Source: Octopus sinensis (taxonomy: Eukaryota). From it: a stretch of 64,000 nt of DNA. Location of the stretch: contig NC_043006.1 in NCBI RefSeq assembly GCF_006345805.1, forward strand, positions 68,572,001 to 68,636,000, in the 5' to 3' direction. Position numbers and translations under genes: made by a program. Within the stretch, counting starts at the first letter, position 1, and every line of letters starts with the position of its first letter. Shown here one piece after another: positions 3,420 to 62,795 of this stretch. The notes beneath the pieces were generated by a model, which was not told where the DNA came from, did not search any database, and saw nothing but the letters and a program-made list of their open reading frames with translations.

Positions 3420-3605
3420 TGAAAAGCACCCAGTGTACTCTGCAAAGTAGTTGGTATTAGGAAGGGTAACCAACCACAGAAACCCTGCCAAAGCAGATAT
3501 TGGAGCTTGGTGGAGTCCTCTGGCTTGCCAGCACCTGTCAAACCGTCCAACCCATGCCAGCAGGGAAAACAGATGTTAAACGGTGATGATGATGATGGTG
3601 ATGAT
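3420..3605 (+). mobile_element. RTE LINE 3' tail fragment
   Basis: aaagcaccc...ttaggaaggg...aaaccgtccaacccatgccagc...(GAT)n. Confidence 0.75.
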
Positions 3606-4804
3606 AAATGTACTCCAAGACATATGATTAAAATGGACGGGGTTGTCATGGCTGGAATGACTTTTAGTACAGGTTTATTCAATCAGGAATAACCTGTGGG
3701 TATACAAGAACAACAGGAACCAAAAGAAAGTGGGTGGTGGTTGTGGTGGGGGTGGTAATAGTGGAGAAGTGTGTGTAGGGAGTGAATCAAAGGAAGGCTC
3801 TCTTCAGATTAACTGATTAATTAATCAGTGCAGGTTGTTGCCAATGGTTACAGAAAGAACTTGAAGAGAACGTGATGATAGTAATAGTAGTAGTAGTAGT
3901 GTATATTAAAACGTTAATATATACCCATTACCATATATTGTCATCATCATCATCATCATCAATTATTATTATTATTATTTAAATATTTTTGTTTAATGTA
4001 CTGCACCTCAGAAATCTTATGTTTCTAGTAACACACCAGGGGATATAAATAAACAAGATGATGATGATGATGGCGATAATAATAATAATAATAATTTAAG
4101 GAGTCAACTAGTGTATAGACAGGCAAGGCTATCTGTAGAATTATGGTTGTGAATATGTGTACATATATAAACAAGCAAAAGTATATATAGAATGTGTGTG
4201 GGACTGTGTGTGTGAATATAAATGAGTGAGTATATAGAATTGTGTATGCGAATGTGTATGTTTATATACAAAGAGGATGTATAAAAAATTGTGTGAATGT
4301 GTGTATAGGCAAGTTAGGATGTTTACAGAATTGTGTTAGTGTATGTAAGTATTGAGACAGTCTGAGGGTGTTTATGGAATATTGTGCATGTGTGTGTCAA
4401 TGTGGATGCATGTAAGCAAGTGAGGGTGTATATATAACTGCATATATAGACAGACAGGTAAGGGTGTATGCAAAAATGTGTGTGTGAAAGTGTTTCTTTA
4501 TATAAGTAGGTGAAGACATATATAGAACTGTGTTTGTGAAAATGCGAGTATACAAATGTGTGCATGTAGAAGTATGTATGTATACGTAGACAGAAGAGGA
4601 TGATGTGTGAGAGAGAGAGAGACTGAGAGATGAGAGAGAGAGATCATCATCATTGTCATCAAAATATTTTCTATATTTTGCAGTTATTTTTAATTGATGT
4701 TAGCACCAGTCTGTATCCACCTCCACATGTATGAGTCTGTGTGTGTATGAGTGTGTGTATGTTTGTGTGTATGTATGAATGCATGTGTAAATGTACATGT
4801 ATCT

Positions 4805-4844
<40 letters not shown>

Positions 4845-5434
4845 CTAGATGTATAATGTATGTATGTGTTGGTATACCAACAGACTTGCTTCCATACTTC
4901 CTCAGCAACAAAAATAATCATCTCTTACATAGCAGAAGGGGAGGGGTGAGAGGGGCGATATTAGAAATGGTGGTGGTGGTGTGTTGGTGTCTGTGACTTC
5001 CCCAATTACATTACTGATATGAACTGGAAGAGAAAAAAAAAGAGATCACGCAACCATCGTATGTCAGAATCTCACCTCAAAATAATGGTGCGTGGGACAT
5101 CTTTCTTTAAATCAGAGAAATATATATAACCCACCCTGTAAATATGTTGAATTCTCAATGGGTTGGTCACAGCTGAAATCTTGTTTTTCTTTCTTAAGAT
5201 ACCTGACAACATGTCAGGTATCAAACTGGTTTACCTACCCATCATATGACACACATACATAGTTCCGCTCATAGTCACATGAAGCTCAAAGACAGGATAA
5301 GAGATGCCAAACCAAAATGCTCACCAAAAGTTAGTCCACATGACACACACATACACATATCTACACATAGTTTTGATGCTAGTCAGTGGAAACTGTACAA
5401 GTGGAGATAAAGAAGACGTGCCAAACATGTTTAC

Positions 5435-5495
5435 CATTATTCTTGTGATTCAGGAGAAATCGCTTTTACTCACCTGAAAGAGACAAAAAAAAATG
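5435..5495 (-). other. Candidate recursive splice site (3'ss immediately followed by 5'ss) with a 39-nt cryptic exon
   Basis: Minus strand reads gactca-T9-gtctctttcag|GTGAGT; second donor ATG|GTAAAC 39 nt downstream; stops in all three frames. Confidence 0.5.
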
Positions 5496-6189
5496 AGTCA
5501 AATAAGTCACCTTTTCAACATTGGATTAACAAAGAAACACATAACAACCAAAACACAATTGGTAAATTTCACTAAACTATAAGAGTACAGACCAATGGGC
5601 ACACCACTGTGTAGTCACTAGAAATAATAGACAAATCTTCAAATTACATCTTAATGTCACAAAAAGAAAAAAGGAAGGATTCATTGGATATTTTAGGCCG
5701 TTGTCTAGCTGCCACCACAAAGGTGTAGTCATGGTTGGAATGACTTTCATTATAGAGCTGACAGGATTGACCTAGTGCTCAACAACAACACAATATTTAT
5801 AGTAGTATCCAGTAGAGGAGCAGGGCTGACTTGGGGTTAAATAACAACAACAAACCTACAATAATATCAATAGGAAACCAATGTTGAGAGAGGATTAACT
5901 TTAAGGGCCACATTGCTCGCAAACATGTTGCCACAGGAGCTGTGTATTTTTAAACACGTTTACAACAAAGATTTCTGACATATCAATTCTTTATTAAGTA
6001 AAAATATTTTAAAATCTTTTATTTGCTCATCAATAGTGCAATTTTTATTAAATTATTATTAATTATGTTTTGTTATTAAAAATTTTTGGGGTTCCCCATT
6101 TTTAAACCTGTAGCTATATCATTCCTGGCTGCACTTGTGTTTGAAAAGGGTCGCATGTAGCCCACAGGCAGTGTGTTTCACATGCCTGC

Positions 6190-6412: not shown

Positions 6413-6454
6413 AACAACATCACAAAAGCTGCAGTTATATAAGTAGGGGACCAA

Positions 6455-6660
6455 AGGTGGCGAGCTGGCAGAAATGCTAGCACACCAGGTGAAATGCTTA
6501 GTGGTATTTCATCTGTCTTTACGCTCTGAGTTCAAATTCCGCCAAGGTCGACTTATCCTTTCAGGGTTGATAAATGAAGTCCCAGTTGCATAATGGAGTC
6601 GATCTAATCAACTGGCTCCCTCCCTAAAAATTTCGGGCCTTGTGCCTGGAGTAGAAACGT
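6455..6660 (+). mobile_element. tRNA-derived SINE with Meta-like domain (family B)
   Basis: ggcgagctggcagaa head, gagttcaaattcc B-box, gtcgact..cctttc..ggtgataaa..gtaccag domain. Confidence 0.85.
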
Positions 6661-7231
6661 ATATAAATAGGTGACCAGGGCTGATCTGGAGTTAAACAAC
6701 AATGTCAGCAAGGGACAGTTTAGATTCTTTATATTTCTAGACAAGAATTCATCCAACTACCATTAATTTCTAAGTAACCTAAAACTATTCACAGAAAACA
6801 CTAATACATGCCACAGCTAGATATTAGAAGCAGCGACATGAGATATAAAATGAATGAAATAGTTATTGACAGAACTGTTTGTGCTACACACACTGTTGAA
6901 AAGAGGGTCATTGACAAGATTGTTGGTGTCACAGGTTCCACACACTGGTGTCACAGATTTGTGACACTAACCATCCTGCCAATGGTCTTGATGTCCCCAG
7001 TTTATTATGCTCTCTTTCTCTCAAGTACTATATTACCCAACAAACTGACGAGTATCCAATCACCAAGTGGCTGTTTGGTTAGAAGTTTGCTTCCCAATCC
7101 TGTAGTCTTGGGTTCACTCCTACTATGTGGCAATTTTGTCAATTATCTTCAACTATAGCCCCAATCCTACCAAAGGCTTATGAGTAGATTTAGTAGAAGG
7201 AATCTGAAAGATGTGTGTATGTATGTATCTA

Positions 7232-7630
7232 TCATCATCATCATTGTTTAACGTCCGTTTTCCATGCTGGCACAGGTCGGATGGTTTGACTGGGGACTGG
7301 CAAGCCAGGAGGCCTCACTAAGCTCCAATCTGATCTGGCAATGTTTCTACAGCTAGATGCCCTTCCTAATGCCAACCACTCCAAGAGTGTAGTGGGTGCT
7401 TTTTACATGTCACTGGCACGGGAGCCAGTTAGGTGGCACTGGCATTGGCCATGTTCAGATCGTGCTTTTTATGTGCTACCGGCACAGGAGCCAGTTGGAA
7501 TGGGGGCTGGGGGTGGGTTGGCATAGACCACGGTGCTTTTTACATGCCACCGGCACAGAAAGCCTGTCAGGTAGCACTGGCAACGCTCCACACATGAATG
7601 GTGCCTATTGCATGCCACCAGCATGAGTGC
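7232..7630 (-). mobile_element. RTE LINE 3' UTR/tail
   Basis: (CAT)n-gtttaacgtccg...ctagatgcccttcctaatgccaaccac followed by tandem units. Confidence 0.85.
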
Positions 7631-11000: not shown

Positions 11001-11485
11001 ACTGAAAGTACCTACCCAAGGTTAAGGGCTATAATTGTTACTTAGGGTCCTTAAATATAGTGAATCTACCCAAGCTCAAGGGTTGTAGAAGTTACTTAGG
11101 GTTCTTACATGCACTGAACTTACCCTAGGTTAAGGTTATAATACTTAGGGGACGACAGTGAATCTACCCCAGGTTAAGGGCTGTAATTGTTACCTTACAT
11201 ATAGTGAATCTACCCCAGGTAAAGAGCTGTAGAAGTTACTTAGGGTCCTTACACACACTGAAACCATCCCAAGTTAAGGGCTATAATTTGTACTTAGGGT
11301 CCTTACCTACAGTGAATTTACTCAAGCATAAGGACTGTAGTTGTTGCTTAGGGTCCTTATAAAAACTAAATCTACCCCCAGGTTAAGAGCTGTAATAGTT
11401 GGTTAGAGACTTTACATTCACTAAATCTACCCCTGGTTAAGGGCTATAATTTGTACTTAAGGTCCTTACATACAGTGACTCTACA
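11001..11485. repeat. ~54-bp minisatellite, about 9 units
   Basis: agtgaatctaccccaggttaagggctgtaattgttacttagggtccttacatat repeated in tandem. Confidence 0.9.
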
Positions 11486-12033
11486 CAACCAAGTTTGGAA
11501 TTATTTTCAGTTTTCATTTTTTTAACAAAGAACAGAACTTTGGAAATTCTTTCAATTACTTTATAACATTATCAACTAGGATTTCCTTGTTAACTGAGAA
11601 ATAGTAATTTAATCCAAGAAATTAATTTAGTCAAAAAATAATAATATAAAACAAAAAAAAACCCTTCACAACAAAAATTATATTTTTGTAAATATCTAAT
11701 TTGTGCTGAAATATTTTAAAGTAGTTTTCTTTGAAATTTAAGATCTAAACTAATTGCAAAACTATTTAGTTGAAACTTTTGATTGATTAATTATAGTTGA
11801 CCAATTAAGAACAGGAACTAAACGGGGATCGGGAATAAAAGTACTCTGCTATTGGATGAAATGCTTAGCGATATTTTGCCCCTTGCTACATTCTGAGTTC
11901 AAATTCTTCTGAGGTTGACTTTGCCTTTCATCCTGTCAGTGGGAATAAAATAAGTACCAGTTGAATACTGGGGTTGATGTAATTGACTTCCCCCTTCCCC
12001 AAAATTGCTGGCCTTGTGCCTTTAGCAGAAAGG

Positions 12034-12034
<1 letters not shown>

Positions 12035-12072
<38 letters not shown>

Positions 12073-12441: not shown

Positions 12442-12908
12442 AATTATGATGATCAGGGCAGCAAGCTGGGGGAATGGTTACTGCACCAGGCAAAATGCTT
12501 AGCAGCATTTCATCCGTCTTTACATTCTGAGTTCAAATTCTACTGAGGTTGCCTTTGCCTTTCATCCTGTCAGTGGGAATAAAATAAGTACCAGTTGAAT
12601 ACTGGGGTTGATGTAATTGACTTCCCCCTTCCCCAAAATTGCTGGCCTTGTGCCTATAGTAGAAAAGATTATTATTATTATTATTATTGTTGTTGTTGTT
12701 ATTATTTAAGATAGCGAGCTAGCAGAACTGTTAGTGCACAGGACAAAATGCGTAGCGACTTTTTGTCTGCCTCTACATTCTGAGTTTAATTTCAGCTGAA
12801 GTCATCTTAGTCTTTCATCCTAAAATAAGTACCAGTCAAACACTGGGGTTCATGTAATCAACTAGTCCCTCCCACCAAATTTCAGGCCTTGTGCCTTTAG
12901 TAGAAAGG

Positions 12909-13300: not shown

Positions 13301-13942
13301 TCTTATTATTATTATTATAATCATTATTGTTAAGGCAGCGAGCTGGCAGTATCATTAGTACGCCAGGCAAAATGCTTAATGGCATTTCATTTGTCATTAT
13401 ATTCTGAGTTCAAATCCTGCTGAGGTCGGCTTCGACTTTCATCCTCTAGGGAGCAATAGAATAAGCACCAGTTATGCACTGGGGGTCAATGTAATTGACT
13501 AGCCTACTTCCCCAAAATTTCAGGCTTTGTGCCTATAGTAGAAAATATTATTATTATTATATTATTATTACTATTATTATTGTATTCATTCTGGCTCTTA
13601 ACACTCTGAGTTCAAGTCATGCTGAGGTCATCTTTGCCTTTCATCTTCTGAGGTCACTAAAAGTACCAAATCAAATACTGGTATTGATGTAATCGACTAG
13701 ACCACCTCCTCTGAACTGCAGGCCTAAGGCTATTATTAGTAACAAGTATTATTAGTGTTGTTCTTGTGTTTTGTTGTTAAAGAAGCAAGCTGGGGGAATA
13801 ATTGGAGCATCAGGAAGAATGTCTTGTAGTATTTCTTCTAGCTCATTACATTCTGAGCTCAAATTCCACTGGGGTCAACTTTTTTGAAAGTACTGACAGA
13901 AACCACTTCCTCAAATTTATAATCTTGTACCTATGCTAGAAA

Positions 13943-14480
13943 CATCATCATCGTTTAATGTCTGGTTTCCATGCTGGCATGGGTTGGATGATTTGATTGA
14001 GGACTGGTGAACCAGATGGCTGCACCAGGCTCAATCTGATCTGGCAGAGTTTTTACAGCTGGATGCCCCTCCTAACGCCAACCACTCTGAGAGTGTAGTG
14101 GGTGCTTTTATGTGCCACCAGCACAAGGGCCAGTCAGGCAGTACTGGCAACATCCACGCTCAAATGGTGTTTTTTACGTGCCACCTGCATAGGAGCTAGG
14201 TGGCGAACATTGATATTATTTTATCTGTTAAATTATTTAGGGGCAAAGCCAGAATGTACGACTCTTTTGCCTCTCATCTTCACCATTATCATCACTTAAC
14301 ATCCATTTTCCATGCTGGCATGGCTTGGCCAGCTGGAGAGCTGCACCAGGTTCCAATTGTCTGTTTTGGCATGATTTCTATGGCTGGATGCTCTTCCTAA
14401 TGCTAACCACATTACTGGACACTTTTTACATGGCACTAGCACAGGTGCTTTTTACATGGCACCAGCATGGGTGCTTTTTA
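13943..14480 (-). mobile_element. Two adjacent RTE 3' tail fragments
   Basis: (CAT)n-tttaa..ttccatgctggcatgg..ctggatgc..ctaa occurs at 13943 and at 14288. Confidence 0.8.
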
Positions 14481-14989: not shown

Positions 14990-16090
14990 CATTTTTATCC
15001 AATTGCCATCTTACACATGCATCACATAGCCATACCATCAAAGTCTTTACTTTTGCTTACTACATCTGATTCTCTATATCCAGTTTTTTTCTCTCAGTTC
15101 ATTTCTACTTCATCATTCATATACACTAACATCACACACCAATGGAGCATGTTCAACTCATTTCTTGCCTACTCCTACAGTCAATTCCCATGTTTCACAA
15201 CCATTCAGCATCACTAGAATCCCTTCGGTACTAGCAGAGGTGATAGTTACCTGAACTTTTTCCATCCCATTCTTACTCTGGCTACTCTCCTATCAGAACA
15301 TTCACCTTCACAGTTAATTAGGTCACCTAGGTACCCAAAACTATCAACTACTTCTAGTGAGTCCAGCAAGCTTTTCAAAGAATTTCCTTCACATATGCTT
15401 TCACAGCTAACTACTCCTGTACATCTGTCATACATGAAGTCTGCCTTCTCTGCTAGCTTGCTGATCTCACTACACATCTTGTACACTCACAATTTACATT
15501 GGGCACACCATATAGAATTCCTTCCTTCCCACTCTCTTTTAGCATATCAAACATGGACATTTTCCAAAGGATAGCAGAGTCCTGTCATTAATTAAAATCT
15601 ATATCTTTATTAGGTTTAGCTGGAGACCATTTTTTCTATATTTTGTTTCCATGTTTAGAATTTCATCTCTAAATTTTGGTTCTTAGTTGAATCTCAGCTG
15701 CTGGAATCAAAATGTGGTTATCCAAATCTTGATTCAAACAGCTAAGATTTAGTTGTTAGAACCAAGTCATTAGCATACAGGAGTTCCCATGGTCAGCTGT
15801 TAAAATCTGGAATGAATAATACTGAGCTAAAAACCAAACCCTGATGAACACCTATTTAATTGCAATCTAAATTCCTTGCTGAATTCATTGACAATATCAC
15901 TTTGTTGACAGCTCTCACAAGCCATTCATCAACACCTAGTTTTCTTAGTAATCACCAAACTACAGAGCATGGTACTCTGTTCAAGGACTTCTCCATATCA
16001 ACAAATATAGGAACTTCTATAGTTGTCTCACTAGGATGAGGACATCAGTGAGACCTTGCCTCAGCCCTGAAATACACCTCAATCAAAAGC
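14990..16090 (-). pseudogene. Decayed RTE LINE reverse transcriptase (ORF2) fragment
   Basis: Minus frames give FVDMEKSLNRVP..RKLGVDEWLVRAV, PWELLYANDLVL, VDSFGYLGD, RVRMGWKKFR and GCETW, with stops and frameshifts. Confidence 0.85.
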
Positions 16091-17832
16091 TAATTATCTT
16101 TCTAATTAGTTGTGCTTAATTTTCTCTTGCTTTCGTAACCTGGCTCATTTGTTTAATCCCCTTGTAGTGGCTTCTTTCTGGAGCAACTCCCTAAAAGCAG
16201 TTGATGATGACGATGCCTCTACACAAATCATTGGGTAATGTACAATACCAATTATCTACTGGAATAAATTAAATCAAATATAGCTCTCTTCAAAATATTT
16301 AGGCAACCTGCCAATGTCAGACACCACTACCACCACCACCACCACCATCATCATCATTGTTTTGACAAGAAGTTCAGGTGTGTAACAGGGTTGGTGTGTT
16401 ATGACTAGTTATGTAATGGTTTATGAGAAAACTAACACAAGTTAGAAGAGACGGGGGGAGGGGAGATTTTCAAGCATGAAATGGGATGGTTCCATCTCTC
16501 TCTCTCTCACACTCTCTCCCTCTCTCTGCAACTAAAATATAATTTTAGTTCTGTTAAGTAAGCTAACACATTGATCAATGTATGTAGGTGTTTGCATGAA
16601 TGCATGCTTCTATGTGTGTGTATATGTATGTGTGTGTGAGTGTATGTGTGTTTGTGTGTGCGACTGTGTGGAAATGTATATTTGTGTGTGCTTATATATT
16701 CAAACAGTAGTGGTATACAAATACAACTGTTGTGTGTGTGTGTTTTGACTAATTATATAGATTACTGCCTTTTAGAAATGTAAGGATTTTTTTCTTCTGT
16801 TATTTTTGCCACACACACACACACACACAAATTCTCCAGAGATTTACAGGAAAAAAACATGTATATAAATTCTTTGTACATATCATATACTCCGCATCAC
16901 ACACACACATGTACATATATATACTACACTATATGTATACACATTCTCTCACACTTTATACACACACACACATATATATAGATATCTTTTATTCTTTTAT
17001 GTATTTCAGCCAAAAAGCTGTGGCCATGCTATGGCACTGCCAGTCATACACACACACACACATATTAAATGAATATTGTAATTATCATCAGCGTTGCTGA
17101 TGATTTGATGCCTAATTTTCCATACTTACATAGGTCAGACAAAATTTGTTGTTGAAGCAGATTTCTTTTGCAGCTGGATGTTCTTGCTGTTGTCAACCCT
17201 CACCTGTTTTCAAGTAAGGTAATATTCTCCTGAGTCTGGATATTTTTCACAGAAGATTGCAAACAACACTGTTTGAATGATGGTGATGTCTGTCTATAGC
17301 TAGCATGGGATATCAAACAAGGATACACACACACAACAGACACAAGCATGTGCATTTCTGTCCATCATATTCACTCACAAGGGTTTGGTTGCCAGAGGCC
17401 ATAGCAAAAAAGACTTACTGAAGGTAGCACACAGTGGGAACTGAACCCAGAGCATGATTTAGTCTCACTGTGTTGCACAAAGCCATGCCAGTACCCTCAC
17501 CCATATGTGTGTGTGTGTGTGTATGTGCAGGTACTCTTGAATGAACAGTAGAGCATTGTTCCAGCAAATAAGATGTTAGAAAATCAAAGGCCAGCAGTCA
17601 AACTACAGTGTTCAGGACGTCCATGCTGTAAGTTCAATTAGTCGCCTGCAAATGCAAAAGGAGAATCGGAGCCATTGGACCAGAAAATAGTCCATAAAAC
17701 TGGATGTGCTCATAGGGAAAGACACTCTAGAACACCAGCTAGCCATATTCGGAGACATTGTTTACACGAATTGCAGAGATGCCTATGGAGTAATAGAGAC
17801 AAAAGGGAAATTTTACCACTATATAAATATAT

Positions 17833-18304
17833 ATCATTATTGTTTAACATCCGCTTTCCATACTGGCATGGGTTGGACGGTTTGGCAGAGGACTGGTGAG
17901 TCAGAGGCTGCACCAGGCTCAATCTGATCTAGCAAAGTTTCTACAGCTGAATGCCCTTCCTAATGCTGAGAGTGTAGTGGATGCTATTACGTGCCACTGG
18001 CATGAGGGCCAGTCAGGCGGTTCTGGCAACAACCACGCTCAAAAGGTGTTTTTATGTGCTACCTGCACAAGAGCCAGTCCAGTGGCACTGGCAATGACCA
18101 CACTCGAATGTTGCTTTTCACATGCCATCAGCACATGTTCCAGTAAGGCGACGCTGGCAATGATCACGCTTGAATGGTGCTTTTCACGAGTCACCGGCAC
18201 AGGAGCCAATCCATGGCCCTGGCAACAATCACGCTAGGATGTACTTTTAACGTTCCACTGGCATGAGTGCCAATCAGGCAGTACTGTCATCGGCCACATC
18301 AGCA

Positions 18305-22299: not shown

Positions 22300-22752
22300 A
22301 TGGTTTCAAATTTTCCACAAGGGCATCCATTTTGGTTGAGGGGATGAGTCGATTACACTGACTCCTAGTGTTCAACTGGTACTTATTTTATTAAACATGA
22401 CAGGCAAAGTCGACCTCAGCAGAATTTGAACTCAGAACGTAGCGACGGGTGACATACCACTAAGCATTTCGTCCAGCATGCTAACAATTCTGCCAGCTTG
22501 CCGCCTTGATGATGATAATAATAATAATAATAATAATCCTTTCTACTATAGGCACAAGGCCTGAAATTTTGAGGGAGGGGGTAAGTGGATTGCATTGACA
22601 CCAGTGCATAACTGGTACTTATTTGCTCAACCCTAAAATGATGAAAGGCAAAGTCAACCTAGGTGGAATTTGAACTCAGAATGTAAAAATGGACAAAATA
22701 CTGCTAAGCATTTTACCGGGTGTGCTAATGAATTCTGCCAGCTCACAGCCTT
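22300..22752 (-). mobile_element. Two tandem family B SINEs
   Basis: gaatttgaactcagaa B-box twice; copies joined by a (TAA)n tract. Confidence 0.85.
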
Positions 22753-23404: not shown

Positions 23405-23822
23405 ACATCATCATCATCATCATCATCGTTTAACGTCCATTTTCCATGCTAGCATGGGTTGGACGGTTTGACCGGGGTCTGGGAAGCCAGGAGGCCCGCA
23501 CCACACTCCAGACTGATCTGGCAATATTTCTACAACTGGATGCCCTTCCTAACGCCAACCACTCTGTGAGTGTTGTGGGTACTTTTTATGTGCCGCCAGC
23601 ACAGGGGCCAAAGGAAGCTGGCAAACGGCCATGATCGGTTGGTGCTTTTTACATGTCACTGGCATGGACGCCAGTCAAGGCGGATTTGGCATCGGCCACA
23701 TTTGGATAGTGCTTTTTACGTGCCACCGGCATATGTATCACAACTACAATTTCCATTTGATTTTTATTTTGATGCTGATGTACTTGACTCAATAGGTCTC
23801 CTCAAGCACAGTAGGTCACCCT
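23405..23822 (-). mobile_element. RTE 3' UTR/tail (same subfamily as 57720-58150 and 42383-42620)
   Basis: Shares tatcacaactacaatttccatttgatttttattttgatg with the copy at about 58045. Confidence 0.85.
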
Positions 23823-24420
23823 AGAATTTGAACTCAGAATGTAAAGTATTTTGTCTGGCATATACAGATGCACACACACACACATTCCTCTATTGAAGTT
23901 TTTATCATTAATTTTTTTTTATTCTTAATCTTTAATTATGAATTGTAATTTTGATTTTATATTTTTTTCAATATTAGTTTTTCAGTATTAGTAAACTTTG
24001 TTTGACTCCTTTTTATACTAAATTTATAGCAATTACTTGCCTCCTTTAAATGTGTAGATATCCACTGTTTCATCCATCTAACCTGCTTATATGATTATCT
24101 CTTCCATCTTTCCCACCCTTACTCTCCTTTTATCCTACTTTCTTTCTTTTTTACTGTTCTCACTCTCTCTCTCTTTCATCATTACTGTTTACTTTGAAGC
24201 TAGTCTAGAAATGCCCATCCTACCTGATTTATGAGTCTGCATAATGCTACTCATATCTGAATACTGCTTTACTCCATCGACCAGACAACATTCTGAATAT
24301 ATAGACTAAATAATAAGTCCAGTTTCAAAATTAATCATATCAAATGATACACAATAACTTCTATCCTCTATGCCTCACTACTCTTTCATTTATTTACATG
24401 TCTAAGCGGATGCTTCCTTG

Positions 24421-24650
24421 CTGAGCTGGCAGAAACGTTAACATGCCATGCGAAATGCTTAGTGGTATTTCGTCTGCTGTTACGCTCTCAGTTCAAATTC
24501 CACCAAGGTCGACTTTGGCTTTCATCCTTTCGGGGTCGATAAATTAAGTACCAGTTACGCACTGGGGTCAATGTAATCAACTTAATCCCTTTGTCTGTCC
24601 TTGTTTGTCCCCTCTATGTTTAGCCCCTTGTGGCAGTGAAAGAAATAAGA
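24421..24650 (+). mobile_element. Family B SINE, long-tail variant
   Basis: Tail ttgtctgtccttgtttgtcccctctatgtttagccccttgtgg, as in 44696-45118. Confidence 0.85.
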
Positions 24651-25334
24651 TATAGGCTCCTCCACAAATTTGTATCTATATGTAGAGGATTTCATCATAC
24701 ACTCATGAAGAAATGACCACGAGGTGTATGTAGTATGATTTAATATTACATAATCATTGATTATATTCATGTTTTCTACTTTGTGAAATGATATGTCTGA
24801 TCCTTATATTATTGAAATTGTAACCAAAGAACAAATGTGATAACAGTACCTCCATTATTTCACTTGCTGTATTATACTCCAAGACTGGCAATAACATTCT
24901 GGATTTTCATTTTGTTTGAAACACTTTCTTTGACAGAAGTACTATGCTTTTCTATACACACTGTTAGCCAGTATTTGCATGAGTGCTGACTGAGGTAACT
25001 ACCTGGATTCCTGAATCACCTTTCACGATCATATATACATGCAACACCACTGTAAATCAACGTCTATAAAATATACTATCTCACTCACACAATACACATA
25101 CAACACATACATACATACATAGATACACGTTACACAGACTACCTCACACATACACACACAATATTATTATCATTATCACAACAGGACATTATGGCAATGC
25201 ATAAACAATATTAAACTGTATCCAATGATTTTACAACAGTAGATCACCACCCTTGTCTGCCAACTTTCTCGACATAACTGGCCACCACCAATGCTATCGC
25301 ATACTTCTGTTAGCTGCACAATTTCACACAATAT

Positions 25335-31768: not shown

Positions 31769-32700
31769 CAGCATGCACCAAATTTTGAATTTCTCATTTC
31801 TCTTTAAAACATATGGACACCATCAGCATGGCAGATTCCAATATGATACAGGAAATGAAGAGGCACACTGTGCTTCAGGCTCTAGCTGCCAACCACAGCA
31901 ACTCAGAAATCACCAGCTTCTAGAGCGTGGCCAAGACATTTGTGTTCAGGGATGGGAAAGAGCTTGGGGTTGATCTATAGCTAAGAGAAAGAAACATTTT
32001 CAGTGGTCAGGACATGTGAGTTCATTTAGTAATTTCAGGACATCATCAATAATCCCAGACAGTCAATGAGGGCCATTGTTGACCAGCTTAAGATAGCAGG
32101 TTTCACTATCAGTCACATGCTATGTGAGAACATTAGGCACAAATCCTATGTGATCATAAGAGGACAGTTTATATCTGTTAAAACCTCAGGGAAGCATGAC
32201 TCAGTTGAAACACTAAACAAATTCTAGTACAACAAGAAACCCATCATGCTCTGTCATTTTTTTCTTTTATGATAAAAACTTTAACTAGTTCATGATCTGA
32301 ACTTTAACTAGATAAGTACTTTAAATGGGAATGTTTACCTTTTGAGAGATGTCAGCATTGAGTTTCCATAATCTCTGATGATCCTAAGCAGTAAGGGTTA
32401 TGTCACGCTGCCTCATTTTTATCCTGAATTACCTAAGGCACAATGTCCCTGCTTGCATCAAAATACTGGACAGAGTAGCCAAGTCCTGGATGTGGGGTGG
32501 TGTATTCCAGTAACACTCAGCTTCTTCCAATTTAGCCCTTGTGACACTGAAGTGGTGGGCTAACAATTTTTCCAACCATGTAATGTTCAAGCTCTCCTAA
32601 TTTGAACTCCAAAAACGACTGCATCTGAAGTATGCTAAGGAATCATTAGGGGCTGCTATCATGAGTAGAGGCTAACTGATCATCCTATGCAGTCTCTAAC
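31769..32700 (+). pseudogene. Decayed Tc1/mariner-superfamily transposase
   Basis: MADSNMIQEMKRHTVLQALAANHSNSEITSF*, PRQSMRAI, ENIRHKSYVIIRGQF, PHFYP and VFQ*HSA (cf. FQQDSA); many stops. Confidence 0.75.
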
Positions 32701-34965: not shown

Positions 34966-35571
34966 ACACACATATAAATAAACATATAAATATATGCATC
35001 TATACATATATACATACAAATATATTCTTATACATACATACAAATGTATATACCATAATCATTATCATCATTTTAACATCCAATTTTCCATGCTTGCATA
35101 GTCAGATGGAATTCATTGAGATAGATTTTCTATGGCTGGATGCCTTTCCTGTTGCTAACCCTCAACTGCTTCCAAGTTAAGTAACATTTCCCCATGGACA
35201 GACGCATTTCCAGTGAAATACTGGAAATGAACAACATCACTTTAATGAAAGTGACACTTGTTTACAAGCATCATGTGACATCAAAACAAGGGAACACATA
35301 TATCCTTCTACTAACATACACACATACATGCATGCACACACATGTGCACACACACACACACATACTCATGATACTCGTCATTTATTGTGACTTTTCTAGG
35401 CAGGGGTTGGATGGTTCAGCAGGAACTGACAACTGAAATGATTGCACAAAGCTCTGCTGTCTGCTTTGACATGACTTTTATAGCTGGATGCCCTTCCTCT
35501 TGTTTTTTACTCATTTTTACTTGTATATATAAGCAACCTGTTGCCTGCCTCTTTTATTTATATACAATGTA

Positions 35572-35928
35572 TATATATAAATTAGAAAAGAACCACCTTT
35601 TATCAATTTGTTAATGAAATAACAATGATATAATTAAATTATACCATATAGAAAAAAATTAAATATACGATAAAAACATATACCAATAATTAAGTAAAGT
35701 ATAAAATAATAAATAAAAAGTATATAATTGGTAAAAAGACTACACGTGTAGTCTTTTGACCAATTATATACTTTTTATTGATTATTTATATATTATTTTA
35801 TATTTTACTTAATTATTGGTATATGTTTTTATCATATATTTAATTTTTTTCTATATGGTATAATTTAATTATATCATTGTTATTTCATTAACAAATTGAT
35901 AAAAGGTGGTTCTTCTCTAATTTATATA
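35572..35928. repeat. ~355-bp spacerless imperfect palindrome
   Basis: Apex tacac|gtgta at 35745/35746; arms match outwards to attagaaaagaaccacctttt / aaaaggtggttcttctctaat. Confidence 0.9.
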
Positions 35929-36041
35929 CATATATTATATATTGTGAAATTTGATTTAGTATTACTAAATTGAATTTTTCCCTGTAAGTTTGGAATAATA
36001 TTCCCTAATATTAGATATATATATATTTTTTTCTTTAACAA

Positions 36042-36555: not shown

Positions 36556-37262
36556 ATCATCATCATCATTGTTTAACGTCTGCTTTTCCATGCTGGTATG
36601 GGTTGGATGGTTTGACTGCAGACTGGTGAGCCAGAGGCTGCACCAGGCTCAATCTGATCTGGCAAGGTTTCTACAGCTGAATGCCCTTCTGAATGCAAAC
36701 CACTCCAAGAGTGTAGTGGGTGCTTTTACATGTCACCAGCACAAGGGCCAGTCAGGCGGTTCTGGCAACAACCACACTCAAAATGTGTTTTTTATGTGCT
36801 ACCTGCATGGGAGCCAGTCCGGTGGCAATGGCAACAACCACGCTCAAATGTTGTTTTTCATTTGCCAACAGCACATGTGCTGGTAAGTTGACACTGGCAA
36901 CGATCATGCTTGAATGGTGCTTTTCACATATCACTGGCATGGGAGTCAATCTGTGGCCCTGGCAGCGACCACGCTCAGATGTGCTTTTAATATTCCACTG
37001 GCATGAGTGCCAATCAGGCGGTACTGTCATCGGCCACGTCAGTGATTTTGATTTGTTACATTTGCCTCAATAGGTCTTCACAAGCAAAGTTCATTGTTCA
37101 ATGAATGAGGGATACTAATAAGTGGGCTGGTTACACCCCACGTTTGGATGTGCTTTTAATGTTCCACTGGCATGAGTGCCAGTCAAGCGGTACTGTCATC
37201 GGCCACGTCAGTGATTTTGATTTTGATTTCACTTGCCTCAACAGGTCTTCACAAGCAAAGTT
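36556..37262 (-). mobile_element. RTE 3' UTR/tail with local duplication
   Basis: Homologous to 17833-18305; 36978-37091 is repeated at 37147-37262. Confidence 0.85.
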
Positions 37263-37592: not shown

Positions 37593-37665
37593 GAAATAAA
37601 GGTCTCAAAAATGTGGCAAGAACAACGCCTGTACCTGTGGTCATCAGACCTCTGGGCATAATACC
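37593..37665 (+). pseudogene. Short R4/Dong-like endonuclease-domain relic
   Basis: EIKVSKMWQ..VPVVIRPLGII with a frameshift. Confidence 0.45.
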
Positions 37666-37714
37666 AGATGGCACTCTAAAACCTTATGGCTAAACACCAA
37701 GAAACTCAAAAGTC

Positions 37715-38770
37715 TTCCAGGCAATAATAGAGGAATTCAAGACAGGTTTACCTGGGAGCTCCTCTATAATGATGACTTTGCTGAGTCACTACCAGATCTA
37801 GAGATGAAGTTTCAAGTGTGGAAGCAACTAGAATAGAAGAGCCTTAGAGTAAATCTAGCAAAAAACCAAAGTGCTAGTAAGTAGGAAGGCAAACAAATCA
37901 CAAAGCCCTTCAGGTTGATGGCTCTGCTTGATCTGTAGAAAAGGTGTAGGTAGAAAGTCCATAAGATGTACCTGGTGTAAGCTATGGACACATAAGTGGT
38001 GCAGCAATATCAAAGAGAGGTTAACCTGGAAGACAGTTTTTGTGTGTGGCAGATGCACAGGGGCAATAAATACTGAAGATGTACAGAAAACAGATTCCAT
38101 CACATGCCAAGAGAAGAAACTAGTAGTTGATAGCTTCCGCTACCTAGGTGACCAAGTCTGTAGTGGGGGTGGATGCTCTGAGAGCATAGCCACTAGAATA
38201 AGAAAAGCCTGGGTAAAAGTTCAGAAAGCTCCTACCCCTGCTGGTAACAAAGGGCTTCTTGCTCAGCGTGAAATGTAACCTGGATGATGCATGTGTGCAA
38301 ACAGCCATGCTACACGGCAGTGAAACAAGGACTATGACTGCTGAGGACACACATAGGCTTGAAAGAAATGAAGCTAGTGTGATCTGCTGGATGTGTGTTA
38401 TGTCAGTGTGCATACACAACAGAGTGTAAGCACCCTCAGAGAAAGGTTGGACATAAGAAGAATCAGATGTGGTGTGCAAGAGAAACAACTGTACTTGTAT
38501 GGTCATGTGCTGCATATGAATGAGGACAGCTGTGTGAAGAAGTGTCACACCCTAACAGTGGAAGGATCCTGTGGAAGAGGTAGACTCAGGAAGACATGGG
38601 ATGAGGCAGTGGAGCACGACATTTGAACATTGTAGATTATTTACATTTGACGGATATTTGTTCTCATCTTGTTTGTTGTTAACAACATTTCTGCTGATAT
38701 ACCCTCCAGCCTTCATCAGGAGACTTGGGGAAATTATGAACTGGGTTCTCATTCCTAAGGTATTTTTCGA

Positions 38771-38890: not shown

Positions 38891-39759
38891 TAACATTGAA
38901 AAATACCTTAGGAATGAGAACCTAGGTTTGAAATTTCCTCAAGACACCTGATGAAGGCTAGAGGGTATATCAGCCAAAATGTTGTGTTAACAACAAACAA
39001 GATGAGGACAAATATCCATTAAACGTAAATAATGTACATAATTCCTCATCTCTTAAATATGGGACAGTATTTGAACATTGGGGCTCGCAAAGGTAATATC
39101 AAAAGACTGATACCTTTGGTGCTATGCTATGATTGAGAAGATACTGCAAGTAAAGTGAGATCGCAGCTGTGGCTGATGCCAGTGTCACATGAGCAGCCCA
39201 TTTAAAAGCAGCCTTGAATTGTTGGGTGATATGCTATGCTTTTATAAGACCTGTTGAGTCAAGTGAAATCGTAGTTGTGGCTGATGCTAATGCCACCTGA
39301 CTGTCTCCCGTGCTGGTGGCACATATGCACCATTCGAACGTGGGTCGATGCCAGTGCCACCTGACTGGTTCCTGTGCTGGTGGCATGTAAAAAGCACCAT
39401 CAGAACGTGGTCGATGCCAGTGCTGTCTGGCTGGGTCCCCATGTTGGTGGCATATAAAAAGCACCATTCAAATGTGGATGATGTTACTATCCTCTGACTG
39501 GTTCCCATGCTGGGGGCATGTAAAAAGCACCATCTGAACATGGTTGATGCCAGTGCTGCCTGGCTGGCTCCCATGCCAGTGGCACGTAAAAAGCACCCAC
39601 TACACTCTCAGAGTGGTTGGCATTAGGAAGGGCATTCAGCAGTACAAACCTTGCGAGATAACATTGAAGCCTGGTGGAACCTACTGGCTAGCCAGTCCTC
39701 AGTCAAACCGTCCAACCAATGCCAGCATGGAAAAACGGATGTTAAACGATAATGATGAT
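37715..39759 (+). mobile_element. 5'-truncated RTE LINE (RT C-half plus 3' UTR), interrupted at 38633-39068
   Basis: WELLYNDD, LRVNLAKTKVL, PHD-like insert, VDSFRYLGD, GSETRT, YGHVLHM and GRGRLRKTWDE; the ORF end resumes at about 39081, then UTR repeats and a (GAT)n tail. Confidence 0.9.
38633..39068. mobile_element. Head-to-head Penelope-like non-autonomous insertion with hammerhead-like cores
   Basis: 12-bp TSD atttgaacattg (38621-38632 and 39069-39080); inverted arms; CTGATGA cores at 38948-38954 (+) and 38713-38719 (-). Confidence 0.7.
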
Positions 39760-42382: not shown

Positions 42383-42620
42383 CAAAGCACCAACCGATTG
42401 TGGCCATTGCCAGCCTCGCCTGGCACCTGTGCTGGTGTCTTGTAAAAAGCACCCACTACACTCATGGAGTGGTTGGTGTTAGGAAGAGCATCCAGCTGTA
42501 GAAACACTGCCAGATCAGACTGGAGCCTGGTACAGCCTCCTGGTTCCCAGACTCTGGTCAAGCCGTCCAACCCATGCTAGCATGGAAAACGGACGTTAAA
42601 TGATGATGATGATGATGATG
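42383..42620 (+). mobile_element. RTE 3' tail
   Basis: aaaaagcacccactacactc..ggaagagcatccagctgtagaaac..(GAT)n. Confidence 0.85.
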
Positions 42621-44463: not shown

Positions 44464-44695
44464 TATATGTATGTATGTGTGTATATATGTGTGTGCGTGT
44501 GTGTGTCATTTCCCCTGCTTGACAAATGGTGTTGGTTTGTTTGTATGCCTGCAACTTTGTGGCTTGGCAAAAGGAGACTGATAGGCCTAAAAAAAAGTAC
44601 TGGTTCGGTTCGTTCGACTTCAAGGTGTTGCTTCAAAATGGCCAGTCTAATGACTGAAGCAGGGAAAGTTAAAAGACATATTTTTATATCAATAT

Positions 44696-45118
44696 AATTC
44701 GTTTCTTTACTACCCACAAGGGGCTAAAGACAGAGGGGACAAACAAGGATAGACAAATGGATTAAGTCGATTACATCGGCCCCAGTGCGTAACTGGTACT
44801 TAATTTATCGACTCCGAAAGGATGAAAGGCAAAGTCGACCTCGGCGGAATTTGAACTCAGAACGTAACGGCAGACGAAATACCTATTTCTTTACTGCCTA
44901 CAAGGGGTTAAACACAGAGGGTACAAACAAGGACAGACAAACGGATTAAGCCGATTATACCGACCCCAGTGCATAACTGGTACTTATTTAATCGACCCCA
45001 AAAGGATGAAAGGCAAAGTCGAACTCGGCGGAATTTGAACTCAGAACGTAACGGCAGACGAAATACCGCTAAGCATTTCACCCGGCGTGCTAACGTTTCT
45101 GCCAGCTCGCCGCCTTTT
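44696..45118 (-). mobile_element. Family B SINE with 184-bp tandem duplication
   Basis: tttctttact.cc.acaagggg begins at both 44702 and 44886; only the right unit has the complete head. Confidence 0.9.
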
Positions 45119-54751: not shown

Positions 54752-55246
54752 CAGGGGTTCTCAACCAGAGTCTATATGACCCCTGGGAGGTCCATATAAG
54801 ACTTTTGGGGATCCATGCTAGCAAAATAGTAAATAGTAAAACAGCAGTGTTTTAAGGGTTCATGAAAAAAGTTTTGATTTAACAGCTGGGTTTCCTTCAT
54901 CATCATCATTTAACATCTGCTTCACATGCTGGCATGAGTTGGATGGTTTGACTGAGGGCTGGCAAACCAGGAGGCTGCATCAGGCTCCAAACTGATTTGG
55001 TAAGGTTTCTACAGCTGGATGCCCTTCTTAATGCCAACCACTCTGAGAGTGTAGTGGGTGCTTTTTATGTGCGCTAACGTTTTTACATAGATCAACTTAT
55101 ATAGGTTCATGAGTAAATAACAAAATAGGTATTTTCCAAGAAGTTTCTATAAAACTAGTTTTTAAACATCGAATGGGTATTGGGATCCACCAGAAAAAAA
55201 TGATAATCAAAGGGGTCCATAGGTAAAAGGTGATTGAGAACCACTG
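54752..55246. mobile_element. hAT-like MITE with an RTE tail inserted at about 54895-55075 (-)
   Basis: TIRs caggggttctcaacc / gattgagaaccactg. Confidence 0.75.
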
Positions 55247-57719: not shown

Positions 57720-58150
57720 AATCATCATCATCATCATCATTTAACATCCGTTTTCCATGCTAGCATAGATTGCACAGTTCGACCGGGGTCTGGGAAGCCA
57801 GGAGGCTGCACCAGGCTCCAGTCTGATCTGGCAGTGTTTCTACAGCTGGATGCCCTTCCTAACTCCAACCACTCTGTGAGTGTAGTTGGTGCTTTTTATG
57901 TACCACCAGCATAAGGGCCAGAGGAGGCTGGCAACATCCACGATCGGTTGATGCTTTTTACGTGCCACTGGCATGGACACCAGACAAGATGGCGCTGGCA
58001 TCAGCCATGTTCGGATGGTGTTTTTTATGTGCCACCAGCACAGGTATCACAACTACAATTTCCATTTGATTTTTATTTTGATGTTGATGTTCTTGACTCA
58101 ATAAGTCTCCACAAGCACAGCAGGTCGCCCTACGATCCAAGGTAAGCACA
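57720..58150 (-). mobile_element. RTE 3' UTR/tail
   Basis: Closely similar to 23405-23822. Confidence 0.85.
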
Positions 58151-58293
58151 GCAGGCCATCCTGTGAGCCTATAGTATCCCTGTAGTAAGTACTATGTGAT
58201 AATATTTATGTACTTATACTCCTGTAGTTCTATACTTAGAGATAGTATCCTAATGAGAGTCAATAAAATACTACAGAATTGAGAAAATGCCTT

Positions 58294-58497
58294 TGGCAGA
58301 AACATTAGCACGCCAGGCAAAATGCTTAAAGGTATTTCGTCTGTCTTTACATTCTGAGTTCAACTTCTGACGAGGTCGACTTAGCCTTTCATCCTTTCTG
58401 GGTCGACAAATTAAGTACCAGTTGTGTACTAGGGATCGATCTAATCGACTGGCCCCCTCCTCCAAAATTTTGGGCCTTGTGCCTAGAGTAGAAAAGA
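58294..58497 (+). mobile_element. Family B SINE
   Basis: Head, Meta-like domain and ggccttgtgcctagagtagaa end. Confidence 0.85.
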
Positions 58498-60419
58498 ATA
58501 TAATGTATGCCCCCTGTATATAACTGTTAACTTGTGGGTTGACTAGGTAGGTGAAGAAAAGTTTTTGATTTACCATGTTTACTATTAAAATAATGAATCA
58601 GATACAATGGTCGGACAGGGAACAACAGGTGAAAGAGTTCTTTTCAAACAGAGGTGTGGTTAGGGATTTGTTCTGTAGTTATGTATTATGTGTGTGTGAA
58701 AGATAGATGGATGGAAAGAGAGAAATAGTCCGGAAAAAATGAGTAGAATGTGTGTGAAAGAGTAGTTTTTGAATTAGTAGCAGCTCAGATCATGTTGACA
58801 AGTCTAATCATCAAGTTCAACAGCTGATTGCTGAACAGTGACTGACATGAGGCTTGCCTGTATTGTTCCCTTTTTCCTGCCAACTCCTTTGGTCTAGTCT
58901 ACTCATTGTGTGTCTGCCTTCTTGAAAGACCTTATATTAAGGTCGACTGATCACCATCCACAACTCTTAAGTAGTTTAGTCTCTTGCTTCAAGTGTTTTT
59001 GTGAATATTAAATGGTCAGTTTTTTTCTTTATTTTTTTTTGCTGACATCAATCAGTCAATTTAAATGAGTAATTAAAAGAGGATTAGTATTTAGGTTCTT
59101 GATGATGTCATCAATCAATGTGAAGAAACTGGTTGCTTAACGGAAATTTTCTAATAGGAATTAGTAAATTTCACTTTCAAATTCTAGGCTAACTTGCTAC
59201 AAAACCGATGTAACCTTGTGATTAAGAAGTGGTTTTGAAACCATGTGGTTCCAGGTTCAATCTTACAGCATAGCACCTTGGCAATGTTTCTTCTGTAGCT
59301 TTGGATTCACCCATATATTGTAAGTAGAGTTTAGTAGACAGAAACTGTACACACACAAACAAGTATAGCAGTGTGTGTGTGTGTGTGTGTGTATATATCA
59401 GCTTTTGTAAAAGATAGACATCAGTAAGAAAAATTGTAAATCAGAGCTCAAAGAACAAGCCAATGAGGTATTATTCTATTTCAGTTGCACAGATGCTCCA
59501 TTTTTTACTCTGGTTGCCGGCAATGGATTGATTCAGTGACTGCCTCAGTGGAAACTTGTAATCAATGATGCTATTGCTCACAAACTACAATGCAGAATCA
59601 AATATCTTTTATCCTCTTTGAATCAATACAATAAAATACTGGTCATGTATTGGGACCAATTTATTTGACTGACCTTTACCTAAATTTGTAATTTCTGACA
59701 AAGGTAGATATTATTACAGTAAAGTAATGGGTAGAACATTATTCAGAATTATTTATCCTCCATTACATCATCACTGTTTTCTCTCTCTCTTCCTCCCCAT
59801 CTCTCCTACTGAGGCAGCCATGTATCTTCTTTACTGCAAGATACCTATATCTATCCCTCTACTTATATTGTAACATTTCATCTGGCACAAAGCCACCTTC
59901 CTTAATCCTACTCCCCACCTCAGTTGAGGGGTCTTGTCTAGCTAATTATTTGGTGACCTCAATGTCACTAATATTGTGTAAAAAGCACCCAGGATACTCT
60001 GTAAAGTGGTCAGTACCATGAAGGGCATCCAACCATAGAAACCATTCCAAATTCAGGCAGTAAAGCTTGGTGCAGTCTTCTGACTTCCCAGCTCCATTCA
60101 AACTGTCCAACCCATGCCAGCATGGAAAACTGACATTAAATGATGATGATGATGATAATGATGATGATAGCTACTTAGTTCCATCCCACTACATTCCAAT
60201 TGAAGTTCTGCGAGGGTTAATTGATCTTTCCTTCTGCTAAATGCCAATTAAACTATCAGTGTCACACTTGGGTCTCCTTCCCCACTTAAATGTGTGTCAT
60301 TATCCTAATAAACATATGCCCGCGATCTTATAAATGTGCATCATAATTGCTGTAAATGAATATTCTAACTGTATGTGTTGTTGTGGCTAGGAGCAGGTGG
60401 ATTAGCACTAAACAGTAGT

Positions 60420-60815: not shown

Positions 60816-62430
60816 CACAATTCTTTACTTCAAATCTTGCTGAAACACACTTTGTCTTTCATTCCCCTCTGGGGTCAATAAACAACCAAACAATCATGTA
60901 ATAGAATTGAACCAATGACCTCTATTCTGTCTCCCCTCTATATAAATACCCACCATTATTAAGGAACTGAAGATATTAACAGATTCTACTGGCATTATTC
61001 TACATAAGAAGTAAATCCTGTCCTGGAAATAGAATGGCACCATTGACCAGACAGCACTCTGCTTGGTGAAGATTCTCTCTACTAATGTTTCAATGACCTT
61101 TCACCTTGAGATATGTCTTCACATTACAGTGTGTAGAAGTTTTTACTTAAACACACTTACAATATAATATTATAATTGGTTCTTTGGTTTATGGTTTCAT
61201 TCTTCCCTAGACTTGGTGAAGTCAAACTAAGTGGTTTGTCTCACAGTCTGTCTGTCTACACTAGCAGGATACAAGTACAAGAATATACAACCCATTACAT
61301 TACACACACGTACATGCATTCACATTATTATACACATATCTACAATCTACATCTATACCTACACACATAAATACATACCTACATTAATATTCACATACAA
61401 GCACATACATACATTAGTATACATTACATATACACCCACACATGCAATTGAAGAGATGACATAATCTATAACCCCGAACTATAAAAAGTAAATTTTGAAA
61501 CAATAATTATTTCTGACAATAAACACAATTCATGACCACCACCACTACAACAAGCACAATGACCACCACCACCGCCGCCGTCACCCTTTACTACTACTAC
61601 CATCACAACTATAATGACCATGACAACACCACTACCTCCACTACAACTACCACCACAACTATGTCAAACTGCACCCTACAGTAGACACAAGGTTAAATTC
61701 CACCCTACAAATAACAATAGTTTGTTATATAACTACTTGTACTATATTATCCCATCTGAATCTTTTACAATACACCTCTATCATTTCATCCCTAACAACA
61801 TATTCCATATGATATATACATCATCATCATCATCAGCCCCCTGGACATTACTGTCTTTAGTCCTTGGATTAATAGAACCTGTTACCCAATTTCCAGGACA
61901 TTCCTCCTGAACAAGGTACCTGTCCATTGCAGGGTTTCTCATTTACACCCGAGTAAGCTGAAATAATAAAATGAAATGTTTTGATTATAAACACGATGCA
62001 CTGCCTGGTCTGTGAATTGAAACCATGATCTTGCGATCGTGGGTGCAACACATTAAACACTAGGCCACATGCCTTGCACAACATATATACATATATATGT
62101 AAAGTGGTTGGCATTCAGAAGGGCATCCAGCCATAAAAACCATGCCAAAAATAAACAGAGGAGCTTAAGTGCAGTCCTTCGCTTTCTTTCTGTCAAACCA
62201 TCCCACCCATGCCAGCATGGAAGAGGGACATTAAATGATAATGAGGCTGCTATATTTTCCCCTGCCCAATCAACTATATTTACTATAGATCAAAGAATTT
62301 GCCAAACCATTGGTTAACTACTGCAAATGCACCAGTAACAATCACACATCACTACCACCATCATCACACACCTCTTCACTACTGTTATAATTACATAAAT
62401 ACTTCACAGTTCCTAGTTGATGGTATATTA

Positions 62431-62795
62431 GTTTCAAATTTTGACACAAGGCCAATAACTTCAAGGAAGTTGATTACATTGATGGTACTTATTTTATTAA
62501 ATGGTATTAATTTTATCAAATGATACTTATTTTATCAAATGGCACTTATCTTACCAAATGGCACTAATTTTATCAAATGGTACTTTATAAAATGATACTT
62601 ACTTTATCAAATGGTACTAATTTTATGAAATAGTGCTAATTTTATGAAATAATACTAATTTTATCAAATGGAACTTATTTTATCAACCACAAAAGGATAA
62701 AAGGCAAAGTTGACTTTGACAGAATTTGAACTCTGAACATAAAAACGAATTAAATGCTGCTAAGCATTTTGCCTAGCATGCTAACGATTCTGCCT
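62431..62795 (-). mobile_element. Family B SINE with an internal 11 x 19-bp array
   Basis: tggtacttattttatcaaa unit repeated at 62483-62687 inside the SINE body. Confidence 0.85.

Follow-up and report, generated by a model that had tools for sequence, protein, structure and literature searches.

Ratchet points and the cryptic exons associated with recursive splicing (RS-exons) have been described in Drosophila (Hatton 1998; Burnette 2005; Duff 2015; Joseph 2018; Joseph & Lai 2021, PMC8605326), where 99.5% of the ratchet points carry TT at positions -5/-6. In vertebrates, RS-sites and RS-exons are known from long neuronal genes (Sibley 2015; Blazquez 2018, PMC6224609; reviewed in PMC5126111), and in human about nine fully suppressed intronic RS-sites have been accepted from approximately 400 junction-supported candidates. 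In the 230-kb intron of locust NPF1, an RS site was predicted from its motif, and its use is supported by U2AF65 RNA immunoprecipitation (PMC8892266).

How far the motif itself predicts use differs between animal groups. Shepard et al. (2009), who covered 13 animals, took the non-transcribed complement of large introns as background and measured 0.07-0.12 ratchet-point-like motifs per 100 kb there. The sense strand of such introns was enriched in the motif by a factor of 4-22 in sea urchin, bee, beetle, mosquito, and fly, whereas the ratio was only 0.9-1.5 in eight vertebrates; no mollusc was among the animals tested. As the motif is unenriched in the large introns of vertebrates, it has a low predictive value there when taken alone. 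An earlier note on the DNA analyzed here, a 64-kb stretch referred to as the window, proposed a ratchet point on its minus strand and knew of no recursive splicing described in cephalopods. This holds for the literature searched, where the terms co-occur only in one reference list.

A fused acceptor and donor at position 5473

Read on the minus strand, the window contains a splice acceptor and a splice donor fused without a gap, TGACTCA-T9-GTCTCTTTCAG-GTGAGT. The branch-point-like TGACTCA (5494..5500) is followed by a run of nine thymines (5493-5485) and by GTCTCTTTCAG (5484-5474), which forms the end of the acceptor. The polypyrimidine tract T9-G-TCTCTTT (5477..5493) has pyrimidines at 16 of the 17 positions from -20 to -4, with T at -4, -5, and -6 and thus TT at -5/-6. 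The CAG of the acceptor occupies 5476-5474 (AG at 5475-5474) and the GTGAGT donor 5473-5468, with the G of its GT at 5473, so that the putative ratchet point CAG|GTGAGT spans 5468..5476. A strong 3' splice site and a strong 5' splice site are hence juxtaposed around AG|GT in TTTTTTTTTGTCTCTTTCAG|GTGAGT at 5473(-). Two matches to yUnAy, TTGAC (A at 5498) and CTCAT (A at 5494), precede the AG by 24 and 20 nt, and the branch point predicted from the sequence therefore falls within the interval of 18-40 nt upstream that defines ratchet points together with a TT(-5/-6) pyrimidine tract.

The earlier note had described the branch-like element, the pyrimidine tract, the CAG, and the gapless GTGAGT, and also a second donor, ATG|GTAAAC, 39 nt further on with stops in all three frames of the intervening 39 nt; each of these is present on the minus strand, exactly where the note had placed it. 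Its likening of the arrangement to published ratchet points and RS-exons is borne out by the fused sites, the TT(-5/-6), the yUnAy matches 20-24 nt upstream, and the weaker donor downstream. The heptamer at 5494-5500 also fits TGASTCA, a consensus of the AP-1/TRE type. Since the window contains 11 heptamers of this form, the likeness is probably meaningless and the heptamer is not special in itself.

Donors were scored with an approximate metazoan matrix based on published frequency tables, and the scores are only rough. By this matrix, CAG|GTGAGT reaches 9.2 bits, compared with 0.58 bits for the donor at +39 nt and 4.0 bits for a better alternative at +149 nt. The former, ATG|GTAAAC (5429..5437, G of the GT at 5434), is equaled or exceeded by 656 of the 7,756 GTs in the window, and a donor at least as good is located 25-100 nt downstream of 30% of random window positions. 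The latter, TTG|GTGAGC (5319..5327, G of the GT at 5324), would bound a cryptic exon of 149 nt, and a donor this good occurs within 25-200 nt of 13% of random positions.

The putative 39-nt cryptic RS-exon, GTGAGTAAAAGCGATTTCTCCTGAATCACAAGAATAATG (5435..5473, minus strand), contains stops in the three frames (TGA, TGA, and TAA). Stops in all frames are found in 12% of random 39-mers from the window, and two of the three here (TGA and TAA) fall inside the donor sequence GTGAGTAA, which means that they are forced by the donor itself. The second donor and the three-frame stops fit an RS-exon, yet they do not discriminate and add almost nothing.

The fused site itself is rare within the window. 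The pattern YYYYYYNCAGGTRAGT has one match on the two strands of the 64 kb, which is the 5473(-) site, whereas 100 dinucleotide-preserving shuffles lead one to expect 0.04 matches per window, and Markov models (orders 1-5) 0.017-0.044. On the approximate matrix, its donor has the top score among the 7,756 GT dinucleotides of the window. It is also one of six YAG sites (both strands) with at least 16 pyrimidines in the 17 upstream positions, and ranks first of 452 AG|GT sites with the other 451 far behind. A second strong AG|GT was not found on the minus strand in the remaining 58 kb of the window.

At the scale of a genome the picture is different. At 0.02-0.04 per 64 kb, approximately 900-1,700 chance sites would be expected in an octopus genome of 2.8 Gb, and the background of Shepard et al. 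is of the same order as the window expectation once their looser threshold is allowed for. The motif thus exceeds chance within the window, but not at genome scale. Because the earlier note had come from scanning many kinds of motifs, meeting with one 2-4% event per window is unremarkable.

Surroundings of the site and the search for a host gene

The site lies in a 1.3-kb block, 4870..6187, without a second copy in the window (self-BLAST and TRF), a further copy being absent from the window by self-BLAST at word sizes 9 and 7. Within the window, the block therefore lacks the multiple copies of an interspersed repeat of the SINE, LINE, or MITE kind. On one side it is flanked by a TG-rich microsatellite (4738-4844, TRF) and on the other by interspersed repeats starting at 6188. 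By base counts the window has 37% G+C; TA, CA, and trinucleotide microsatellites are abundant, and in-window repeats alone mask 31% of it.

A motif of this kind could stem from a duplicated gene fragment or from a transposable element of low copy number, in which case the exon-intron boundary would reflect ancestry and not local function. Such an origin is encouraged by the density of SINE-like and LINE-like repeats in the window, given that old elements may seem unique within 64 kb. However, self-BLAST down to word size 7 leaves 4870-6187 single-copy in the window, searches around the site turned up neither a TE protein domain nor a homologue, and a 23-mer spanning the junction has no exact match in JGI metagenome contigs. 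We regard a repeat origin as highly unlikely. A TE origin as the main explanation was rejected when self-BLAST (word sizes 9 and 7) returned no second copy of the block.

The most numerous of the repeats listed is a SINE-like family with the head ATCATCATCGTTTAACGTCCGTTTTCCATGCTGGCATGGGTTGGACGG, of which there are at least 14 copies in the window (8 plus, 6 minus). Plus-strand stretches of this family are located at 7228-7495, 13935-14200, 17824-18210, 23410-23624, 54890-55103, and 57721-58051, and minus-strand stretches at 2059-2126, 3526-3593, 39497-39758, 42384-42613, 60086-60153, and 62181-62248. The bodies have internal tandem units of 62-66 nt, as at 1726-1962, 36705-36950, and 39283-39597. 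A second interspersed family is found at 6453-6624, 11833-12070, 12454-12704, 13331-13554, 24414-24654, and 58281-58504, with inverted copies at 22373-22730 and 44693-45116. In this family, a 184-nt unit forms a tandem duplicate at 44702-45067 (90% identity), and 11859-12070 and 12493-12704 are local duplicates of each other (91%).

Degenerate 3' parts of a non-LTR (RTE/LINE-like) reverse-transcriptase ORF occur at 37600-38623 (+) and 15250-15486 (-). The ORF has a weak PHD-like Cys/His finger (Pfam E=0.003, under the curated cut-off), and the named proteins most similar to it (47-61% identity) come from Octopus vulgaris and O. bimaculoides, which is the one pointer to the source and makes a cephalopod origin plausible. 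Two arms of 168 nt (35560-35727 and 35775-35942; 93% complementarity, 47-nt spacer) form a near-perfect inverted repeat, judged by its sequence a long hairpin or MITE-like palindrome. There are two minisatellites, at 62482-62702 and 11012-11488, one with a 19-nt unit ATGGTACTAATTTTATCAA (11 copies, 80% matches) and the other with a 54-nt unit (9 copies, 67% matches). An ORF beginning FQDIINNPRQSMRAIVDQLKIAGFTISHMLCENIRHKSYVIIRGQ at about 31900-32100 (+) resembles by eye the helix-turn-helix N-terminus of a mariner/Tc1-type transposase; it had no match in Pfam or in the homologue search.

No coding exon of a host gene was recognized in the searches made. Twenty-one stop-to-stop ORFs from the six frames of 5075-5949, across the site, were joined as a chimera and gave no hit in a homologue search, so that this route yielded no sequence from another species or from a transcript, and there were likewise no homologues for 64 window ORFs joined into a 4,986-aa chimera. 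Pfam found no protein domain in the 53 longest non-repeat ORFs of the window, and exact look-up of four ORFs in a contig index (two of 57 aa at the site, and 143 and 174 aa elsewhere) returned no record. Over the whole window, no RNA families were detected with Rfam at gathering thresholds and no tRNA with ARAGORN.

The composition of the window shows no strand asymmetry pointing to minus-strand transcription. Base skews are about 0.8% overall, poly-T and poly-A runs number 30 and 28, and the SINEs are oriented 8 plus to 6 minus. GTRAGT occurs 41 times on the plus strand and 29 times on the minus strand, which is uninformative on the transcribed strand; Shepard et al. saw no difference between sense and antisense for single donor or acceptor motifs.

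The exon-free result fits a very long intron and intergenic DNA alike and cannot separate them. As a giant intron would by definition be free of exons in the window, the negative exon searches do not count against the earlier note. In the annotation of O. vulgaris, introns and genes have medians of 2.5 kb and 20 kb, respectively, and the gene density is 8.4 per Mb; with introns this short and genes this sparse, an exon-free window of 64 kb is more likely to be intergenic than to lie in one intron. In O. bimaculoides, only about 14% of the genes exceed 30 kb. On such figures, we would give the sense strand of a long intron a prior of roughly 0.10-0.15.

The strength of the acceptor and of the donor, each taken for itself, also bears on whether an unannotated exon of the minus strand, non-coding or regulatory, might have an ordinary splice site here. 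The acceptor could open an exon of a UTR, an lncRNA, or a poison exon, running from 5473 to 5435 or 5325. Alternatively, the donor could close a non-coding exon whose last letters would be ...CAG (to 5474) and whose acceptor-like site would lie at 5617/5618 (TTGTCTATTATTTCTAG|) or 5571/5572. The acceptor-like sites 98 and 144 nt upstream and the donors 39 and 149 nt downstream would thus allow complete models of normal size, every one of them non-coding, which is consistent with the lack of protein hits, and the O. vulgaris annotation has 1,849 lncRNAs and long UTRs. Similar models can, however, be drawn at many AT-rich positions, 30% of which have a comparable weak donor nearby. An exon made mostly of a T9 pyrimidine tract, or one starting with a perfect donor, would moreover be unusual. 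An ordinary exon boundary is unlikely.

Chance motif or recursive splice site

The best explanation is that the site is a functionless chance motif, to which we assign a probability of approximately 0.55. A poly-T/pyrimidine tract, a CAG, and a GTGAGT would have come to stand side by side by chance in AT-rich, repeat-poor non-coding DNA of a cephalopod-like kind. The motif and its rarity in the window are observed directly, and from base rates together with the lack of any sign of a gene we infer that it has no function. With about 1,000 chance sites per genome and no sign of a transcribed strand, 5473 is a recursive-splicing candidate, no more.

Two points speak against chance. The site is extreme and not marginal, as it combines the top donor, a near-perfect tract, TT(-5/-6), and a well-spaced branch-point-like sequence. 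In addition, all five invertebrates of Shepard et al. showed their 4-22x enrichment on the sense strand of large introns, so that the 5473 site would probably be real, provided that cephalopods behave like those invertebrates and that the site is located in a sense intron. Should the minus strand be transcribed, the site would probably be recognized by the spliceosome.

These same points favor a genuine recursive splice site, which would consist of a ratchet point and its cryptic RS-exon within a long intron of a minus-strand transcript. Here, U2AF/U2 would bind the T9-GTCTCTTTCAG acceptor, and ATG|GTAAAC (5434) or, more plausibly, TTG|GTGAGC (5324) would aid definition of the cryptic exon. 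Joining of the upstream exon to 5473 would then regenerate a 5' splice site, ...|GTGAGT, which would beat the weaker donor downstream, and the cryptic exon would be removed with the remaining intron.

The sequence features of fly ratchet points (juxtaposed sites, tract, and TT(-5/-6)) are all matched, and the cryptic exon would be short, out of frame, and non-coding. The 9.2 bits of the ratchet-point donor exceed the 0.6 or 4.0 bits of the exon donor, as the competition model demands, and the site is in DNA that is unique within the window and not in a repeat. The long genes of O. bimaculoides are expressed in neurons. The first segment would measure at least 58.5 kb, which is close to the upper end of the 2.6-63.6 kb known from flies.

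Against this, the searches of the window yielded nothing that would point to transcription, a host gene, or conservation, and chance alone would place about 1,000 of these motifs in a genome. In flies, recursion is seen in only 6% of the large introns, introns above 64 kb are far in the tail of the octopus distribution (median 2.5 kb), and repeat-rich vertebrate genomes are nearly without ratchet-point enrichment (0.9-1.5), the window being repeat-rich as well with 31% masked. Combining the prior of 0.10-0.15 with an enrichment of 1.5-8 fold would give a posterior of 0.06-0.5 (approximately 0.06 at 1.5 fold, 0.3 at 4 fold, and 0.5 at 8 fold). By descent, cephalopod genomes belong with those of invertebrates, but their size and repeat load are like those of vertebrates, and an intermediate value of about 0.22 was adopted.

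A genuine recursive splice site is accordingly a doubtful alternative to chance, and a working ratchet point or RS-exon within a cephalopod intron of more than 60 kb is rather improbable. The giant intron removed stepwise that the earlier note proposed from the motif is possible but unsupported.

If the site were a true recursive splice site, it would be the first documented in a mollusc or lophotrochozoan, and the fly-type mechanism with its TT(-5/-6) CAG|GTRAGT signature would operate in the long genes that cephalopods expanded independently. Were the site in use, recursive splicing would reach into a third major animal lineage, one in which the expansion of long neuronal genes was independent, and there would be a concrete locus for studying how cephalopods splice very long introns. 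Validated, it would add a new phylum to those with this known mechanism; as long as it is unvalidated, it counts as one motif.

The present value of the motif is mainly methodological, as it illustrates that a second donor and stops in all frames arise near-automatically in AT-rich non-coding DNA. Since an AG|GTRAGT motif of this kind is a 2-4% event per 64 kb and occurs about a thousand times per genome, calls from motifs only belong at the genome-wide level and not at the level of single loci. They are best made as sense-versus-antisense enrichment across annotated long introns.

Comparison with described splice systems

Of the six features that define a recursive splice site, 5473 displays the two that are purely of sequence, namely the juxtaposed splice sites and the pyrimidine tract with its predicted branch point, and on these two class membership cannot be granted. 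Pseudoexons and decoy or cryptic splice sites resemble the site in having strong splice-like signals deep in non-coding DNA and a non-coding pseudo-exon. In pseudoexons, however, the acceptor and the donor are apart and no 5' splice site is regenerated, whereas at 5473 the donor abuts the AG.

For locust NPF1, the host intron is known and U2AF65 binding has been measured there, while 5473 is a motif. The two cases are alike in that NPF1 is from an invertebrate with a very large genome, and that its site was first predicted from sequence, in the locust with the Burnette matrix. Vertebrate RS-sites share with 5473 the YAG|GT core, an RS-exon with premature stops, and a competing donor downstream. 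They have been proposed for very long introns of neuronal genes, and the genome analyzed here is similarly repeat-rich and of vertebrate-like size.

Junction reads, saw-tooth coverage, lariats, and ultraconservation define the Drosophila sites, whose host introns and genes are known, in contrast to 5473, which is known as a motif in genomic sequence. They also differ in that the Drosophila consensus favors GTAAGT over the GTGAGT seen here, and in that the nearest downstream donor of 5473 is very weak (0.58 bits). What 5473 has in common with Drosophila ratchet points is a tract with TT(-5/-6) running without a gap into CAG|GTRAGT, a short (about 50 nt in the fly), out-of-frame, and non-conserved cryptic exon, here putative, and a ratchet-point donor that is stronger than the donor downstream of it.
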